A DNA stretch of 64,000 bases from Mobula hypostoma (Eukaryota), in NCBI RefSeq assembly GCF_963921235.1, contig NC_086100.1:123504001-123568000 (forward strand), read 5' to 3'. Position numbers and translations under genes: made by a program. The notes beneath the pieces were generated by a model. It ran no database searches. It was not told the origin of the DNA and was given only the letters and a program-made list of their open reading frames with translations. Of the stretch, positions 4,653 to 61,641 are shown piece by piece. Every line of letters begins with the position of its first letter. Position 1 is the first letter of the stretch.

Positions 4653-5518
4653 TGTTACGTACCCCGTAACTGGGTTGCCAAACCTGCAGAAATGGATCAC
4701 TCAGTTGGAGTCTGGATTACTAGAACTAAGAAAGTTTTATTAAAGAAACAAGCAACACAGTACTCTAATCAAAAGGATAATAAATGCAACAGTTCAGCAA
4801 TGATAAACACACATGTGCACAGAATTAAGATAACAGGATCAATCAAGCTCTATCGTTGTCTAGGGGTAAATGACCAGTTTCAAAGTGACGCAAAGTTCAG
4901 TTCAATTTAGTTCAGTTCAGTTCGCAGTAATCGCTGCCGTGGTGATGGACAGTGGGGGAAGGACAGAGAGAGCAAAAGCGAATGAATATTCAAGGCTTCC
5001 ACACAGACCTTCGCAGTCAGCTTTTGGGCGAGTCCTTTGTGATGTCATGAAGTCACCGACCGTGACCCCTCCATTTCCAGATGCGATTGTTTCCCTGCGG
5101 TGAACCCGGCACCCAGGCAAGGGTGGACACACACCAGGTTCCCGCCAATCGTGCCTTTCCACCCTGTGCGTCTATGGCTTGTCCCGCGACTAGCCGTCCA
5201 AAACTTCCCACCGACTTGTGAGAGGCGCACCGCTTCAAGGGTCTCGTTACCTCGGGGTGTCGTGTGTGTCCTGCCTTAGCGAACCTGTCCCTTTTTATCC
5301 CCCTGCTGGGGTATCGCCTGTCCATCACTTCAAACAGTTCAGGGTTCAAAGGGGGAGCCGATCTTGACAGCCTTCCGTCCTTCATTAACATCTCCAAATG
5401 CTGCTCCATTGTTTTCCTTATCTCTCTCTCTCCTGAAGACAGGTGGCAGACCAACTGCTGATTCCACTGGTGCCAGCCCAGGCCAGCTACATCTTAATCT
5501 ATGTGTATTCTTGTCACA
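4653..5518 (-). repeat. 5' LTR of Gmr1-like element
   Basis: ~866-bp direct repeat of 1333-2199, about 95% identical by eye, with many CpG transitions. Confidence 0.95.
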
Positions 5519-5819
5519 CATGTAGGTCCAGAGGGCAGGTGGCCTGAGTGAAGCTAAGGCATAAATTCAAGAGATGTGGTGAGAGCTCGGAGAAGTTGAC
5601 CATCAGTGTCACAAGCTTTTCGAGCAGATATGTGGGAGCTGCTCTGCACTGCTGAGGATTTAGAAATGGTGAGGCAAGTGTAACAGTAAAACTGATAGTC
5701 CTGCACAGTGGAACTATGATGGTGCCAGAATGGTAAGTATTCCAGAACACTGGATGCTTTTCCTATCGAAATCCCAACACAATTTCAATTCAGCCTTTTT
5801 AGATAATACTGAGTAGTAT

Positions 5820-34789: not shown

Positions 34790-34966
34790 GGGTGGTGGTA
34801 GATGTAAACACATTAGGAACAGTTGAAGGACTTTCAGATAGGATGAAGGAAAATTGAGGGCTGTGTGGGAGGCAATTTTTAGATTAATCATGGAATATGT
34901 TAAGGGGTTGGCACAACATCATGGGCCAAATAGGATGTACTGTGCTGTACTGTTCTACGTTCTATG
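34790..34966 (+). mobile_element. CR1 3'UTR fragment
   Basis: GGCACAACATCATGGGCCAAA..TGTGCTGTACTGTTCTACGTTCTATG. Confidence 0.65.
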
Positions 34967-39834: not shown

Positions 39835-40797
39835 TCTTCAAAGTTGCTGCGCAGGTTGACTCCGTGGTTAAGAAAGCATATGGTACACTGGCCTTCATCA
39901 ATCATGGGACTGATTTTAGGCACTGAGAGGTAATGTTACAGCTATATAGGACCCTGGTCAGACCCCACTTGGAGTACTGTGCTCAGTTCTGATCATCTCA
40001 CTGCAGGAAGGATGTTAAGACATCTGTTAGTCTGAAAGTCTTCACTCTCCAGGGCGTAGGCCTGGGCAAGGTTGTATGGAAGACCAGCAGTTGCCCATGC
40101 TGCAAGTCTCCCCTCTCCACGACACCAATGTTGTCAAGGAAAGGGCATTAGGACCCATACAGCTTGGCACCAGTGTCATCGCAGAGCAATGTGTGATTAA
40201 GTGCCTCGCTCAAGGACACAACACATGTTGCCTCGGCTGGGGCTCGAACTCACAACCTTCAGGTCACTAGTCCAATGCCTTAACCACTTGGCCACGTGCC
40301 CACAGGAAGGATGTGGAAACCATAGAAAGGGTGGAGAGGAGATTTACAAGGATGTTGTCTGGATTGGGGAGCATGCCTAATGCGAATAGGTTGAGTGAAC
40401 TCGGCCTTTTCTCCTTGGAGCAACAGAGGATGAGAGGTGACCTGATAGAGGTGTACAAGATGATTGTGTGAATCGTCAGAGGCTTTTTTCCAGGGCTGAA
40501 ATGGCTAACATGAGAGGGCACAATTTTCAGGTGCTTGGAAGTAAGTACAGAGGAGATGTCAGGGGTAAGTTTTTCACTCAAAGAGTGGTGAGTGCGTGGA
40601 ACGGGCTGGCAGCGACGATGGTGGAGGCAGATACGATAGGGTCTTTTAAGAGACTTCTGGATGGGTACATGGAGCTCAGAAAAATAGAAGGCTATGGGTA
40701 ACCCTAGGTAATTTCTAAGGTAAGGACATGTTTGGCACAGCTTTGTGGGCAAAGGGCCTGTATTGTGCTGTAGGTTTTCTGTGTTCTATGTTCTACA
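39835..40797 (+). mobile_element. CR1 3' fragment
   Basis: KVAAQVDSVVKKAYGTLAFI, RGKFFTQRVVSAWNGL; TTCTATG tail. Confidence 0.9.
40016..40302 (-). mobile_element. tRNA-head SINE with CORE-like body and RTE-related tail
   Basis: 12-bp TSD CAGGAAGGATGT (40004-40015, 40303-40314); A box TGGCCAAGTGG, B box AGTTCGAGCC. Confidence 0.88.
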
Positions 40798-40799
40798 TG

Positions 40800-41010
40800 G
40801 GGGGGCGGGTGAGGTCTGGGCCTGACGTCCCGCTCACCCAGGGAAAGTGAACGCGCAATACTTGCCTCTCCTTTCCCGGTGTAGTGATCGCCACGTGGTC
40901 ACTGTCTGGCCTGCTAGGCAGGAGGCCACTGCAAATGGCCTCTCCTACATTACTGCATCCGTAGCAACACCTTCTCGCCGGTGCCCCCCGTTTCCACCGA
41001 GCTTGCTACG
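40800..41010 (+). ncRNA. Predicted HDV-like self-cleaving ribozyme at the RTE 5' end
   Basis: P1 GGGGGGC 40800-40806 with GCCCCCC 40983-40989; P2 CGTAGCAA 40960-40967 with TTGCTACG 41003-41010; P3 ACC/GGT; L3 TTCTCGCC; J4/2 CCGA. Confidence 0.72.
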
Positions 41011-41046
41011 TCATGGTGTGACCGAGTGTCTGGCGGTATAACTGGA

Positions 41047-41185
41047 TGGGTAGGCTGGGCTCGTTAGCCTTGGTTGGCAGCCAGCCTAAGAGAAGGACAA
41101 CTCTGAATCCAAACCCGGGCAGGTGGGGCTCGTTAGCCTTGTCAGGCCATCCATCTAGGAGAAGGGCACTCCGACGTAAATCCTA
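41047..41185 (+). repeat. 69-bp tandem duplication in RTE 5'UTR
   Basis: GGGCTCGTTAGCCTT at 41057 and 41126. Confidence 0.8.
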
Positions 41186-41457
41186 CCACCCAAGGGCCTC
41201 GCTGTCACCGTCCCAGCTTGCTAGGCTATGACAGATGAACCCCTGGTGTAAAGGGTGGGGCCAATACCGCACACACTACACTCCACCTAAAATACCATTG
41301 CGCAGGCCACATCTATGACCATGTTCCCTGACCATTCATCAAGCCCTGCAGTGATGGGAAATGGGTGAAAAAGGCAGGTGGAAGATGACACTGGAAGCCG
41401 CAGTTCCGACCCTGCATGCAGATGGTTCAGGTGTATGGGTCGTCTGATGTCGACCCC

Positions 41458-42389
41458 TGTTATGCAACTCTGGGGTTCCTTTTTGCTGTGGACTGTCACT
41501 TTAAGGCACAAGAAAGAACTGAGACTAACTTCTGGACGTCTGCTGAGAGAGAGAGGGGCAGAGTCTGTCTTTCAGCTCGTGCTTACACTTTCACAAGGAC
41601 ACTGACTACTGCTGTCAGCTTTTGGATTGCCATGGAAAGAGAGAGAGGTGGAGTTATTTGATGGACAATCGATGTTATGGTTTCTCTGCAGCATGTTTAC
41701 ACTTTGCAAGGACACTGGCAGCTTCCAAGTTCTTACAGAGAGAGAAGGGAGAAGCTGATTGATGGACAGCTGGTATTCAGCACAGTGAGATAAATAGAAG
41801 GTCAACTGATAGACTGACAGACACATGGTTTTGGACACTGAATGAGCTTTGTTGTGCCCACAGTAAAGGTGGGTTTTGGAGGATTGATCAGGCGGATCGA
41901 TCAGTGGCTCTCGCAGTGTGAAAAGGGTGTGACCGGTGGGGAGTTATTCGTGTGTCCAACCCTTGTCTGGGTTGATAATTCCACCACAGAAGAACGATTC
42001 CCCCTTGTTGTGGTCACAGTCGGTGACTTCTAAAGGATTTCAGAGGACAACCGGAAGATCGACGGTGTCAACTCACCTGAAGACTCAAATCCCTCCCTCT
42101 CTCTCTCTCTCCCCACCACTACTCAACTCAATACCACAAACTGAACCGAACTTTACTCATCATCGTAAGACTATCTATTTACCCCTAGTCTTGAAGAAGC
42201 TTGGTTTTCATATATTTCCACACACACACACATATATATATAAAATCATTGCTAACCTGTTTGATATATCTGCACTTATATTACTGTATTGCTTAGTTAC
42301 TAATAAATACCATTAGTTAATAGCAATACTGGACACCAAAGTGTTTTCCATTTCTGCTGGATCTTTAACCCGTCACAGGGTACGTGACA
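41458..42389 (+). mobile_element. Solo LTR related to the 1333-5518 LTRs, inserted in RTE 5'UTR
   Basis: TGTTA...TGACA ends, 5-bp TSD ACCCC (41453-41457, 42390-42394). 3' end CCATTTCTGCTGG..GGGTACGTGACA is homologous to the reverse complement of 1333-1375. Confidence 0.88.
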
Positions 42390-45300
42390 ACCCCGGAGAT
42401 GACAATATCATTCGGCAGTGCCCTAAATGACCAAGCAGCCTTCTCTGGGACAGCACTGCTTGCTCCACCCGGAGAGGGGCCTAGAAAAGGTGGCCTAACC
42501 AAAGCTCGTTTCCATTTCCCCCAGTTGGCTAGCTGTGGGTCAACGGGCATCCTCAAATGTGGTCAAACAACAACAAAAACGAAAAGTACACACCTGCCTC
42601 ACAAGGAGTGCAAGGACTAAAGCTCGCATGCTGGAACATCAGAACCATACTCGAGTGGTCACCCAGAATGACGATCCACTCTAGCTGCGCATGAACTTTT
42701 AAGACTGAATGTCGACATCACTGCTGTCAGTGAAGTCCGCTTCCCAGAGGAAGGCAACCTTCAAGAACATGGCGTCGGCTACACCCTCTACTGGTCAGGC
42801 GAGCCAGAGACTGAGAGACACCTTTCTGGCATTGGTTTTATGGTCAGGAACTCCATTGCCTCCAAACTTGAAAAATTGCCAACGGGTCACTCCAACCGTA
42901 TCATCTCCATGCACCTCCCACTTCGAACCAAGCAGCATGCCACACTCTTCAGCGTGTACACCCCCACTCTTCAAGCAGATCCTGCAGAAAAGAACAAGTT
43001 TGACACTGATCTGCGCACCTTGTATGGAACCCCCCTGAAGACGATAAGGTCTTCATCCTTGGTGACTTCAATGCCAGAGTAGGCCTAGATTCAGACGCCT
43101 GGAAAAGAGTACTTGGTAAATGTGGTGTTGGAAACTGCATCGACAACGGGCGCCTTCTGTTAAGAGTTTTGCGCGGAGCAGCATATCACCATCACTAACA
43201 CCATTTTCCAGCAGAAAGACAGTCTGAAGACAACCTGGATGCATCCTCGGTCCAAGCATTGTCACCTCTTAGACTACATCTTGGTGCACCAGAGAGACCT
43301 TCGGGACATCTTACTCACCCGAGTGATGCCCAGTGCAGAGTGTCGTACGGACCCTCGTCTTGTCCGCTGCAAACTCAGTCTCCATTTCAAACCCAAGCCA
43401 AAGAGAGGAGGCGCTCCAAGGAAGAAGTTTCAGGTTGGCAACCCCCAGTCAGTTGAAGCGAAAGCTGACTTTCAGACGAATCTTCAGTCAAGGCTTCAGG
43501 ATCCCAGTTTCCCTACAGACTCCTCTCCAGAAGTGCTTTGGGAACACCTAGAAACCACCATCCTGCAAACCTCTGAAGAAGTCCAAGGGTTTTCCACAAA
43601 GAAGAACAAGGACTGGTTCGATAGGAACAATCAGGAGGTCCAAGAAAACAACCAGGAGATCCAAGAATTGCTGGTGAAGAAGAGATCCACCCACCAGGCA
43701 CACCTTGCTCAGCCGTCTTGTCCTGATAAGAAAGTAGCTTTCCGCCTTGTACGCAGCAACCTCCAGCTCAAGTTTCAAGAGATTCAGAAAGTGTGGTGGA
43801 CCAACCTCGCAAAGAGAACTCAGCTTTGTGCAGACACCGGTGACTACAGAGGGTTTTATGAAGCCATGAGAGCGGTGTATGGCCCTTCACACCAGGTCCA
43901 GAGTCCCTTGCGCAGTGCAGACGGTCAGGCACCCTTCACAGACAAGGCGTCCATCCTGAACCGGTGGTCGGAACATTTCCAGACTCTCTTCGGCACCAAT
44001 CACATGGTACAAGACTCAGCAATTCATCGCATCCCACAACAGCCAGAGAAAACAGAACTGGACAAGATTCCAACCCCGGAAGAGAGTCAAGGCCATAGAG
44101 CAGCTGAAAAGTGGCAAGGCAGCAGGAGTTGATGGAATCCCACCTGAGATTTGGAAGCATGGGGACCCAGCGTTACACACCAAACTCCACGAGTTCTTTG
44201 TCTGCTACTGGGAACAAGGTAAACTACCACAGGGCCTCCGTGATGCAGTCATCATTGCCCTGTATAAGAACAAGGGGGAAAGGTCCGACTGCTCCATTTA
44301 CCAGGGGATAACTCTTCTCTCTATCACAGGAAAAATCCTCGCAAGAGTACTCCTCAACAGATTGGTGCCCATCATTGCAGAAGAACGCCTCCCAGAGAGC
44401 CAGTGTGGCTTCAGAGCCAACAGAGCACCACCAACATCGTATTTGTTCTCAGGCAGCTCCAAGAGAAATGTAGGGAACAGAACAAGGGATTGTACGTGAC
44501 ATTTGTCGACCTTACCACAGCGCTCGACACTGTGAGCAGGGAAGGTCTGTGGCAAATCATGGAACGACTGGGATGTCCCCCAGAGCTCCTCAGCATGGTC
44601 ATCCAGCTACATGAAGATCAGAGTGGCCAAGTCAGACACAACAATGACCTCTCAGAACCCTTCCCAATAGACAACGGAGTAAAGCAATGCTACGTCCTCG
44701 CACCGACTCTCTTCACCATCTTCTCCAGCATGATGCTCAAAAGGGCCACAGAAGACCTTGATGACAAGGACGGTGTCTACATCTGATACCGCACCGATGG
44801 CAGCCTGTTCAACCTGAGGCGACTACAGTCCCACACCTAGACACTGGAGCAACTCATCTGAGAGCTACTCTTCGCCGATGATGCTGCCCTTGTTGCCCAC
44901 ACAGAGACAGCCCTGCAGCGTATAACATCCTGCTTCACAGAGGCTGCCAAGCTCTTTGGACAGGAAGTCACCTTGAAGAAGACAGAAGTTCTCCATCAGC
45001 CCGCACCTCAGGAAGATTACCACCCTCCCCGCATCACCATCGGTGAGGTAGAGCTGATGACAGTCCACCAGTTCAGCTACTTTGGGTGCACCATCTTGTC
45101 AGATGCCAGGATCGACAAAGAGATTGACAACAGACTGGCAAAGGCAAACAGCGCATTCAGCAGGCTGTACAAAAGAGTCTGGATCAACAAGCATTTGAAG
45201 AAAATCACAAAGATCAGTGTGTACAGAGCTGTTGTGCTGACCACCCTCTTGTACGGCTCCGAGTCGTGGGTCACCTACCATCACCAACTGCGACTCCTTG

Positions 45301-46568
45301 AGCGTTTCCACCAGCACTGCCTCCGCACCGTCCTCAACATCCACTGGAGTGACTTCATCACCAACATCGAAGTCCTCGAACAGGCGGAGGTCACCAGCAT
45401 CGAGGCCATGCTGTTGAAGACGCAGCTGCGCTGGGCAGGGCACATCTCCAGGATGGAGGATCATCGCCTGCCCAAGATTGTGCTGAATGGCGAACTCTCC
45501 ACTGGCCACAGTGACAGAGGGACACCAAAGAAGAGGTACAAGGACTCTCTGAAGAAATCCCTTGGTGCCTGTCACATTGACCATTGCCAGTCGTCTAATC
45601 TAGCCTCCAATCGCGAGGCCTGGTGACACAACATTCACCAGTCTGTCTCCTCCTTCGAGAACGCACGCAGGGCTGGCATTGAGGACAAAAGGAGAAGGAG
45701 GAAGAACTGTGTCACAGCAGCACCAAACCCAGAACAGAATTTCCCTTGCAGTCACTGTGGCCGGGCCTGCCTGTCCCATATTGGCCTCGTCAGCCACCAG
45801 TGAGCCTGCAGCAGACGTGGGCAGCCCCCTTCCTAAATCTTCGTTCGTGAAGTCAAGCCATGATAATGATGATGATGTTCTATATTCTATGAATAAATTG
45901 AACAGTATTTTAAAGTAAATGAAATAACAGATGAGAAACAAGTGCCAGTTTTGCTGAGTGCATTTGGTTTAAAGGCATACAATTTGCTTAGATATTTGAT
46001 AATCCAACCAAACCTGTGAAAGTAATGCACGGACATTTAGAACCAAAAGCATTTTTGATTGCCAGACACTTTAGGTTTCAGAAGCAGAATCAAAAGTAAG
46101 GGGAATACTTTTCAGCGTATGTCACTGTATTGGAGAAGTTGTCTGAGCATTGTCAGTTCAGCAATGTGATTTATGATGCACTGAGAGATTGTTTAGTTTG
46201 TGGAAATTTACAAGAAAGCACTCAAAAATTGCTCCTAACTGAAGCACAACTTATATTTAAAAGAACAGTTGAAGTTACTACATTGATGGAAACAGCAGAC
46301 AGAGATGCATTGAGTTGCAGTCAAGTGAGTGTGAACAAAATTGTAACGTCTAAGCAGAAACCTGCCTGATCGAACAATTATGTTACCCTTGTGGCAAGGG
46401 CTCTCATACACCAAATCAATGCAGATTTAAAGGTGAAATTCACACAAAATGCAACAAAGTAGGACACATGCAAAGAGCATGATGGATAGACAAAAATAAA
46501 TGGACTGCACAGGGAAGAGAAAAAGCTAAAAAGTCAAATTGCATTTTCAAATAAAGCACAAATCTTCA

Positions 46569-52059: not shown

Positions 52060-53465
52060 TTTTGTTCAAAAAAGGTAGTAGGAATAGTCTGGGTAATTAT
52101 CGACCAGAGAGCCTTACGTCTGTGGTGGGAAAGCTGTTGGAAAAGATTCTTAGAGATAGGATCTATGGGCATTTAGAGAATCATGGTCTGATCAGGGACA
52201 GTCAGCATGGCTTTGTGAAGGGCAAATCGTGTCTAACAAGCCTGATAGAGTTCTTTGAGGAGGTGACCAGGCATGTAGATGAGGGTAGTGCAGTAGATGT
52301 GATCTATATGGATTTTAGTAAGGCATTTGACAAGGTTCCACACAGTAGGCTTATTCAGAAAGTCCAAAGGCATGGGATCCAGGGAAGTTTGGCCAGGTGG
52401 ATTCAGAATTGGCTTGCCTGCAGAAGCCAGAGGGTTGTGGTGGAGGGAGTACATTCAGATTGGAGGATTGTGACTAGTGGTGTCCCACAAGGATTGGTTC
52501 TGGGACCTCTACTTTTCGTGATTTTTATTAACAACCTGTATGTGGGGGTAGAAGGGGGGGTTGGCAAGTTTGCAGACGACACAAAGGTTGGTGGTGTTGT
52601 AGATAGTGTAGAGGATTGTCGAAGATTGCAGAGAGACATTGATAGGATGCAGAAGTGGGCTGAGAAGTGGCAGATGGAGTTCAACCTGGAGAAGTGTGAG
52701 GTGGTACACTTTGGAAGGACAAACTCCGAGGCAGAGTACAAAGTAAATGGCAGGATACTTGGTAGTGTGGAGGAGCAGAGGGATCTGGGGGTACATGTCC
52801 ACAGATCCCTGAAAGTTGCCTCACAGGTAGATAGGGTAGTTAAGAAAGCTTATGGGGTGTCAGCTTTCATAAGTCGAGGGATAGAGTTTAAGAGTCACGG
52901 AGTAATGATGCAGCTCTATAAAACTCTGGTTAGGCCACACTTGGAATACTGTGTCCCGTTCTGGTCACCTCACTATAGGAAGGATGCGGAAGCATTGGAA
53001 AGGGTACAGAGGAGATTTACCAGGATGCTGCCTGGTTTAGAGAGTATGCATTATGATCAGAGATTAAGGGAGCTAGGGCTTTACTCTTTGGAGAGAAGGA
53101 GGATGAGAAGAGACATGATAGAGGTATACAAGATATTAAGAGGAATAGATAGAGTGGATAGCCAGCGCCTCTTCCCCAGGGCACCACTGTTCAATACAAG
53201 AGGACATGGCTTTAAGGTAAGGGGTGGGAAGTTCAAGGGGGATAGTAGAGGAAGGTTTTTTACTTGGAGAGTGGTTGGTGCGTGGAATGTACTGCCTGAA
53301 TCAGTGGTGGAGGCAGATACACTGGTGAAATTTAAGAGAGTGCTATACAGGTATATGGAGAAATTTAAGGTGGGGGGGGGTTATATAGGAGGCAGGGTTT
53401 AAGAGTCGGCACAACATTGTGGGCTGAAGGGCCTGTACTGTGCTGTACTATTCTGTGTTCTATGG
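52060..53465 (+). mobile_element. CR1 LINE RT plus 3'UTR, young (RT frame open)
   Basis: 459-aa ORF 52023-53402 with all RT motifs (KFADDTK); 5'-truncated. Confidence 0.95.
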
Positions 53466-60811: not shown

Positions 60812-61641
60812 ATTAGGGCACTGTGCAGGAGAGCTCAGTTCATTCACAAACAGAGTGATCAGAACACTGTCTCATGCATTGTACATTAAATGATACGTCA
60901 CACAACAGAAAAATCAGATCACTGCAAGAGTGGAGAAAAATAATAAGGATCTGTTTCCAAATGTTTAGGCATTATCATACCTGGAAATTCTGCCTATTTA
61001 TGTTTGGTTTTAATTATTATAGTTAAAACACATCTTTCTGAGGTACCACAACAAGAACTTAAATAACGAAATTAGTCAGTTGATAAAAAAAGAGAATGCG
61101 GATTGTGAAAAAAACTCGCAGTTCAAAAGTTGCAAAGGTCAGTTAGTACCCAAAGGGTTAGACAGTGCTTCTTTAAAACACAGGAAAACACACAGGCTAA
61201 GCAGTAAACATCTGCTTCAGAAGTTAATTCAATTTAGAGAACTTATGTCCCAGTCTTAACCAAATATTTCATTAACAAACATCTAAACAAATGCTTTCAA
61301 GTTTCTATCAGCCCATGGAGTCAGAGTGACTTAATCCTGAATAATAGTCTGGTTCTTCCTCATCGTAGTAATCATTCCCAGACATCATGATTCCATTACC
61401 CTATGACCCCAGCACTGATCACTCACCCAAAAGACCGGCAGGAATTGAGGATGAACAGAAGAGAGGGAGCAAGCATTCCCTCACACTTGCTGACTTGTCA
61501 GGGAGAAACCCTTGGAGAAAGGTCATGTGACATTGCAGGAAAGTCACCCATAGGACATTAATCAAAGATGACAACTAAAAGAAGACTTAACAAATCATCA
61601 AGGCAATTGCAGCGCTTACATTAAATTTTTTTCATACTCAC

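Follow-up and report, generated by a model that had tools for sequence, protein, structure and literature searches.

A predicted HDV-like ribozyme without P4 at the 5′ end of an AviRTE-related RTE retrotransposon family

HDV-like ribozymes have been described at the 5′ junctions of the RTE, Baggins, R4 and L1Tc retrotransposons (Ruminski et al. 2011, as cited in the relevant parts of PMC6765202 and PMC3774820). As far as those accounts of them go, the locus described here resembles these elements: a nested double pseudoknot heads a LINE that apparently has no promoter of its own, the known or predicted cut falls at the 5′ junction, and release from a co-transcript is the proposed function. The elements in question are reportedly mostly from insects and other invertebrates and possess P4. 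In contrast to the elements of Ruminski et al. 2011, the family found in our window (the whole 64-kb stretch of DNA analyzed) has no P4, has a J1/2 of 153 nt and comes from a different host lineage. A missing P4 does not exclude membership among the HDV-like ribozymes, because the R2 ribozymes of silkmoths (Bombycoidea) also have no P4 stem, with a J1/2 of 216-498 nt, and P4 is dispensable for activity (PMC3774820). Only the catalytic C and an A are conserved in the J4/2 region of silkmoth R2 (PMC3774820). The window module and silkmoth R2 share the combination of a very long J1/2 with no P4; however, R2 inserts site-specifically into 28S rDNA and the 5′ strand of its P1 can be rRNA, whereas the window RTE occupies dispersed sites and its P1 is made of element sequence. 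In the HDV-like ribozyme of abalone (Haliotis discus), 5 nt replace P4 (Webb and Luptak 2011, cited by PMC3774820); judged by that description, it is similar in having a few nucleotides at this place and a marine host, marine invertebrates being among the hosts of the relatives recovered here as well. Large HDV-like ribozymes are accelerated nearly 1000-fold by a stable J1/2 helix joining P1 and P2, and in drz-Agam-2-1 the P1.2 peripheral domain is a single helix, whereas J1/2 of the window is a multi-hairpin domain (PMC4908430). Any novelty implied by the initial annotation for a P4-less ribozyme at the 5′ end of an RTE element was overstated, as RTE 5′ ribozymes and the pairing of an absent P4 with a very long J1/2 had both been described already (PMC6765202, PMC3774820).

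The element itself resembles AviRTE, with which it shares the RTE lineage, a conserved 5′ UTR, a single ORF and a 3′ end in ...AAGCCATG (PMC4844689). AviRTE is filed under LINE/RTE-BovB, but PMC4844689 calls its relationship to BovB no more than distant; thus, the original designation of the window family as BovB-like holds at the RepeatMasker class level but not as a statement of close kinship. Non-autonomous derivatives of AviRTE reuse pieces of its 5′ UTR, and the paper makes no mention of a ribozyme (PMC4844689). In the literature that we searched, which lay outside the primary RTE-ribozyme papers, HDV-like ribozymes were not linked to BovB, AviRTE or cartilaginous fishes. The window module would extend the known RTE 5′ ribozymes to the AviRTE-related "aquatic" lineage, where a ribozyme seems unreported; what is already established about HDV-like ribozymes in LINEs would not change.

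At 40800-41010, sequence reading and a descriptor search revealed the strands of a nested double pseudoknot in the order P1-J1/2-P2-P3-L3-P3′-P1′-(P1.1)-(P4)-J4/2-P2′ (Table 1). The positions that the initial annotation gave for P1, P2, P3, L3, P1.1 and J4/2 were reproduced base for base. P1 has 7 pairs, where 6-7 are expected, and its first nucleotide is the predicted +1. The usual first P1 pair in HDV-like ribozymes is G.U; the window copy has G-C, which counts against a ribozyme. P2 can be extended by C40968-G41001 across the bulged C41002, and P1.1, in HDV-like ribozymes a two-pair helix between L3 and the bases that follow P1′, would here be limited to the single pair C40974-G40990, since U40973 and U40991 cannot pair. 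HDV-type L3 loops are 7-8 nt long and carry U, C and G at positions 1, 3 and 6, respectively. The window combines a 3-bp P3, ACC/GGT, with a loop of this type, UUCUCGCC, in which U40972 and G40977 occupy the positions of the HDV U20/G25 pair. The claimed 8-nt length of L3 was correct, but the C at 40978 is not the family majority letter, which is T. The CCGA of J4/2 stands immediately before G41001 of P2′, as CNRA requires. No P4 helix is present in the window copy. Its place is taken by the 6 nt at 40991-40996, in agreement with the roughly 6 nt first reported, and P4 is likewise absent from all relatives, such that none of the five lineages defined below has it. Although the element copy is dead, its ribozyme has the family majority letter at every paired position.

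Table 1. Positions of the predicted ribozyme strands and of the parts of the RTE element in the window.
Feature	Positions	Strand	Remarks
Left target-site duplication, ATGTTCTA	40788..40795	+	8 nt, repeated at 45875-45882; lies in a CR1-like LINE, within its (TGTTCTA)n tail
P1, 5′ strand, GGGGGGC	40800..40806	+	7/7 Watson-Crick with GCCCCCC; predicted cut 5′ of G40800, the first base of the element family
J1/2, 153 nt, closed multi-hairpin peripheral domain	40807..40959	+	folding compared with shuffles
P2, 5′ strand, CGTAGCAA (40960-40967), plus C40968	40960..40968	+	8/8 Watson-Crick
P3, 5′ strand, ACC	40969..40971	+	identical across five lineages
L3, TTCTCGCC, 8 nt; family majority TTCTCGTC; C40974 is the P1.1 partner	40972..40979	+	
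P3, 3′ strand, GGT	40980..40982	+	3/3 pairs with ACC
P1, 3′ strand, GCCCCCC	40983..40989	+	pair table made by script
G40990, then 6-nt linker TTTCCA (40991-40996) at the place of P4	40990..40996	+	
J4/2, CCGA, fits CNRA; C40997 is the putative catalytic cytosine	40997..41000	+	assigned by position
P2, 3′ strand: G41001, bulged C41002, TTGCTACG (41003-41010)	41001..41010	+	duplex alone -10.5 kcal/mol
Rest of 5′ UTR	41011..41352	+	DNA ~70% identical to relatives; homologous to the conserved AviRTE 5′ UTR PCR target
Decayed single RTE ORF, endonuclease + reverse transcriptase	41353..45625	+	starts MGNG*KRQVED; broken by nested insertion
3′ short-repeat tail, ATGATAATGATGATG	45860..45874	+	boundary with right duplication ATGTTCTA (45875-45882) ambiguous

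The J1/2 domain is unusually stable. Folded alone, it reached -67.1 kcal/mol (z = -3.65), and none of 200 shuffles was as stable. Closed domains of this type are known to activate large HDV-like ribozymes from the periphery (PMC4908430). All four hairpins proposed for it at the outset (GGGTGAG/CTCACCC, GGGAAAG/CTTTCCC, AGTGATC/GGTCACT and GAGGCCA/TGGCCTC) were present in the minimum-energy fold. When P1 and P3 were enforced and the P2 strands were left free, the nested part had an energy of -87.7 kcal/mol, to which the P2 duplex adds about -10.5 kcal/mol, compared with -90.0 kcal/mol for the best purely nested fold. Therefore, the HDV-type fold is energetically competitive.

Downstream of 40800, the window contains a decayed RTE-type LINE. 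The element was first described as full-length, which is accurate for its extent; however, it is a dead copy, with an ORF frame broken many times and a nested insertion of ~930 nt. It has a single ORF with endonuclease and reverse transcriptase, a short-repeat tail instead of poly(A) and a length of ~4 kb without the nested insertion, which are the features of the RTE clade. The start of the ORF matches MGKGRKRQVED of relatives, an RVT_1 domain was detected at 44403-44786 (E = 1e-10), and homologues carry Exo_endo_phos and RVT_1. The 3′ end reads ...AAGTCAAGCCATG and is followed by an (ATG/ATGA)n tail. An ORF1 placed directly after the ribozyme was rejected, the true ORF starting at 41353. In the intervening 5′ UTR all three frames are equally "conserved"; therefore, conservation is at the nucleotide level. 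The counterpart of the conserved AviRTE 5′ UTR PCR target lies at about 41190-41215 of the window. No second copy of the RTE 5′ end occurs within the 64-kb window. The nested insertion lies at about 41458-42387, just past the RTE start codon, between the flanks CGACCCC and CAACCCC; (CT)n and (CA)n(TA)n runs occur within it, and three related loci (L001, L002 and L003) do not have it. Part of the 5′ UTR, at 41044-41145, is built from a ~69-nt unit (GGGCTCGTTAGCC...AGGAGAAGG) with 2 copies in the window and 3-4 in the relative L021. This unit is shared with a far more abundant repeat, as its depth exceeds that of the flanks 30-100x in organisms C and D of the public sequence runs described below. 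The RTE lies within a CR1-like LINE, having integrated in its (TGTTCTA)n tail. CR1-like 3′ ends with this tail occur at 40267-40799, 34899-34966 and 53397-53464, and the CR1-like family ranks with the most abundant repeats of each of the four DNA runs compared (depth 1e5-2e6).

A protein search with a 297-aa piece of the ORF recovered the same RTE lineage in many animals, with 55-70% amino-acid identity among decayed copies. The named proteins came from Penaeus, Narcine bancroftii (electric ray), Lytechinus, Diadema, Labeo rohita and Octopus, and further from Stylophora, Elysia, Nucella, Pelodiscus and suboscine birds, the electric ray being among the sources of the nearest ones. We identified the lineage with the AviRTE-related "aquatic" RTEs (PMC4844689) because bird copies, from Lepidothrix (L003) and Pitangus (L004), are among them. 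Relatives of this "aquatic" lineage were thus named or located in shrimp, sea urchins, molluscs, coral, fishes and an electric ray. Many of the copies are annotated as "craniofacial development protein 2-like". At the DNA level, copies in bird, sea-slug, fish and shrimp genomes, in other assemblies and in metagenome contigs are ~70% identical, a spread that would fit repeated horizontal transfer of the "aquatic" RTE.

The ribozyme region was reached by only two of the eight protein-guided loci, L001 and L021. The other loci were set aside: L002, L019 and L020 are 5′-truncated or diverged, L003 is rearranged, L015 has no recognizable core, and L004 consists of ORF fragments only. A very permissive descriptor applied to the loci returned only noise in GC-rich contigs. 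Scanning for the core pattern yielded 10 matches in metagenomes, 3 in bacterial genomes and 0 in viral contigs. The true relatives among the metagenome matches were L005/L006, which are one locus, and L007, with RTE homology downstream. The remaining seven were unrelated by their sequence context and absence of RTE similarity (L008 was examined closely), and the three bacterial matches were taken as unrelated; these ten therefore serve to calibrate the chance rate.

Five lineages were thus available for comparison, namely the window, L001, L005/L006, L007 and L021, each relative being a single decayed copy. P3 is kept as ACC/GGU in all five, as is an HDV-type L3, which reads UCCACGU, UCCACGCU, UACUCGU or UUCUCGCC. 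The core pattern of the relatives can be written as ACC / U(C/A)C(A/U)CG(C)U / GGU / RCCCCCU, and RCCCCCY is kept as P1′ in every lineage but L021. The relatives have a J1/2 of ~100 nt that also contains a long hairpin. L005 and L007 are more canonical in several respects: P1 is complete (7/7) and starts at the first base after an unrelated AT-rich flank, P1′ is followed by GG, which gives a two-pair P1.1 with CC of L3, and the linker is a short ATTCCAA. Their modules lie at 2461-2610 of L005 and 1982-2132 of L007. The first P1 pair is G-C in the window, G.U in L005 and A-U in L007, and the last pair is C-G or U.G. P1 of L001 is degenerate (4-5/7). The window-type relative L021 is 5′-truncated and keeps P3 and CAGA; its P2 is 8/8 as CAUAGCAA/UUGCUAUG, via a G-C to A-U change. 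Both positions of this double change are CpG sites, so that decay could account for it. The distant relatives pair poorly in P2 (3/8, 5/9 and 7/9), and their P2-type duplexes are no better than shuffles. Covariation is therefore thin, comprising three forms of the first P1 pair, two forms of the last and one P2 change at CpG sites, with P3 invariant. RNAalifold, which cannot represent a pseudoknot, preferred for the relatives a competing nested fold in which the partner of the G-run is CUCC. A possible long-range helix of the relatives, CAUCCNC/GNGGGUG, competes with the J1/2 helix that uses the same CAUCC.

Comparison with Rfam gave a match in one relative. L001 matched RF01787 (drz-agam-1) at the homologous place with 22.7 bits (E = 0.019), below the gathering score of 37, and ACC-UCCNCGU-GGU, the P3 and L3 of the relatives, aligned to the drz-Agam-1 consensus. 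P1 enters the Rfam models as unpaired columns instead of pairs, and 32 nt of the drz-agam-1 alignment correspond to just 9 nt in L001. No HDV-like match was found in the window, in 401 nt or in 81 nt around the core, either at the gathering threshold or at E up to 10.

Public sequence runs from about 18 organisms hold parts of the 5′ region. These data are assembled contigs, and the ends given here are the points at which the similarity of a contig ends. Over 40500-41500, contigs of the upstream CR1-like family (depth 1e5-1e6) stop at ~40800, where a different multi-copy family starts (depth about 1e3-8e3, tens of contigs). Among loose ends at 40780-41030, organism C contributed 10 contigs at 40800, 6 at 40801 and 3 at 40802, and organism D contributed 8 contigs at 40800. 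Similarity therefore stops at 40800-40802 in at least 27 contigs from two other organisms, which is the accumulation of 5′ ends at G40800 that the initial annotation had proposed to look for. Beyond this point, the flanks agree with their consensus at 0.43-0.6 and are unrelated AT-rich sequences. Depth rises from less than 3 at 40789-40797 to 380-660 at 40798-40806, and the family does not extend upstream of 40799; such an extension had been named in advance as fatal to the idea. One 484-nt contig aligns from exactly 40800 and carries 233 nt of unlike sequence upstream. Copies of the family thus begin at the predicted cleavage site behind unrelated flanks, as is the case for retrotransposons with 5′ processing. 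In the window copy, four extra bases, CATG (40796-40799), separate G40800 from the left target-site duplication, in line with the offset of about 4 nt noted previously. One contig from an RNA-labelled run crosses the 5′ junction of another, degenerate copy, which speaks against a ribozyme.

The variants in these runs contain little that bears on pairing. At paired positions, variants above about 8% in organisms A-D are only C>T or G>A at CpG, at sites 40960/61, 40979/80, 40989/90 and 40998/99; they are decay and not information. The family majority differs from the window copy at 40893, 40957 and 40978, with T at 40978, the seventh base of L3.

Overall, we favor a genuine HDV-like 5′-processing ribozyme that cuts 5′ of G40800 and has set the 5′ ends of the family, and we give this reading a probability of about 0.7 from sequence comparison. 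The stretch 40800-41010 would be a 5′ module of the RTE, comprising a minimal HDV-like ribozyme with no P4 and one P1.1 pair, in which the large structured J1/2 domain would hold P1 and P2 together. The element, as a putatively promoter-less LINE, would be transcribed within longer host or neighboring transcripts, and its RNA would adopt the nested double pseudoknot. With C40997 of J4/2 and bound Mg2+ as the putative catalysts, the phosphate 5′ of G40800 would then be attacked by the 2′-OH of the preceding nucleotide, freeing an element RNA with a 5′-OH at G40800. Full-length new copies would start at G40800 because this freed RNA would be the template for target-primed reverse transcription.

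A sharp family 5′ end could also come from a precise transcription start. The module might be a relic that descends from an active ribozyme, of more canonical form in the invertebrate relatives, but that no longer cleaves; the fold would survive as a structured 5′ UTR, and the 5′ end would be set by an internal start. The core indeed looks derived and weakened: P1.1 has a single pair, L3 is 8 nt long, P1 opens with G-C, and Rfam gives no match. AviRTE points in the same direction. The AviRTE consensus sequences (PMC4844689 Supplementary Data 5) begin with CTTCTCCACGGACACCCCCTTG, a stretch homologous to L3-P1′ in the relatives; they contain no 5′ strand of P1, no J1/2 and no 5′ strand of P2, and they continue with a different local hairpin, CUUCUCC...GGAGAAG. 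Therefore, either the module is dispensable or lost in that branch, in which case birds and nematodes may carry a truncated module, or the consensus is 5′-incomplete. Despite this missing 5′ half, AviRTE has thousands of copies (PMC4844689). Nevertheless, we regard a relic, the strongest of the alternatives, as unlikely. A putative promoter would have to place its start exactly on the first base of P1, with which the family 5′ end coincides to the base in the contigs of both organisms; with the family majority letters, every pair of P1, P2 and P3 is intact; and the ribozymes of silkmoth R2 have no P4 either (PMC3774820).

Another possibility is that the HDV-like fold mainly serves protein binding or translation initiation on an uncapped RNA, with cleavage secondary or absent. 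An IRES-like action and binding by the protein of the element have been suggested for the ribozymes of R2 and L1Tc (PMC6765202), and the 5′ UTR at 41011-41352 is as conserved as the ORF. However, such a role is compatible with cleavage, the ORF start at 41353 is 343 nt past the ribozyme, and the role alone leaves the start of copies at the first base of P1 unexplained. We consider it improbable as the main function.

A chance resemblance was addressed by running an HDV descriptor on the 64-kb window and on dinucleotide shuffles. In its loose version (G-U allowed, P2 of at least 6), the descriptor gave ~5 matches per shuffled 64-kb window, so loose HDV-like matches are worthless; a second loose match in the window, at 61193, was rejected as AT-rich chance noise. 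At the strict quality of the module (7 Watson-Crick pairs in P1, 8 Watson-Crick pairs in P2, P3, G and CNRA), the window gave 1 match and the shuffles gave 0/30. Hence, although very many windows were scanned, G-rich and C-rich runs with an inverted repeat falling into HDV order by accident are a very remote explanation for a module that sits exactly at the 5′ terminus of a LINE family and whose core is kept in relatives, one of which (L001) matches drz-agam-1 below gathering.

In a broader and more tentative proposal, to which we assign somewhat less than an even chance, the horizontally spreading AviRTE-related "aquatic" RTE lineage would carry a conserved P4-less HDV-like ribozyme that defines its 5′ end. 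In the window family, the ribozyme would have gained the 153-nt J1/2 and a stronger P2, would still be active and would also head abundant non-autonomous derivatives. The AviRTE-related lineage is known to have moved horizontally between distant animals, and a self-contained module that forms the 5′ end without a host promoter would help explain its establishment in new hosts. Were all this so, the vertebrate genomes that carry the family would contain thousands or more potential self-cleaving ribozymes that cut host transcripts containing them in the sense orientation; were the abundant non-autonomous derivatives to cleave as well, they would be a large unannotated source of transcript cleavage. 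Additionally, the lineage offers a natural series for the minimum of the HDV core, from relatives with a canonical core and a J1/2 of ~100 nt to the window module with its single P1.1 pair, no P4 and 153 nt.

Several observations concern possible derivatives. In contig coverage, 40806-41315 is deeper than the ORF. In organism R (run X38), a relative of the ribozyme region only, 40825-41022, reaches a summed depth of up to 3.8 million; this relative is probably a non-autonomous element headed by the ribozyme. Close to fixation in it are 40979 C>T (L3 UUCUCGCU), 40983 G>C (in 96%) and 40989 C>T (in 65%). The last of these would give a G.U first pair, and the coverage starts past 40806, the P1 partner of 40983. 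In L003 (Lepidothrix coronata), a fragment of the AviRTE 5′ UTR, 3′-end-like sequence and an (ATT)n tail lie at 5205-5345 and 5770-5815, directly upstream of a second AviRTE copy; together they resemble a non-autonomous element, assembled from 5′ UTR and 3′ end, beside the LINE copy.
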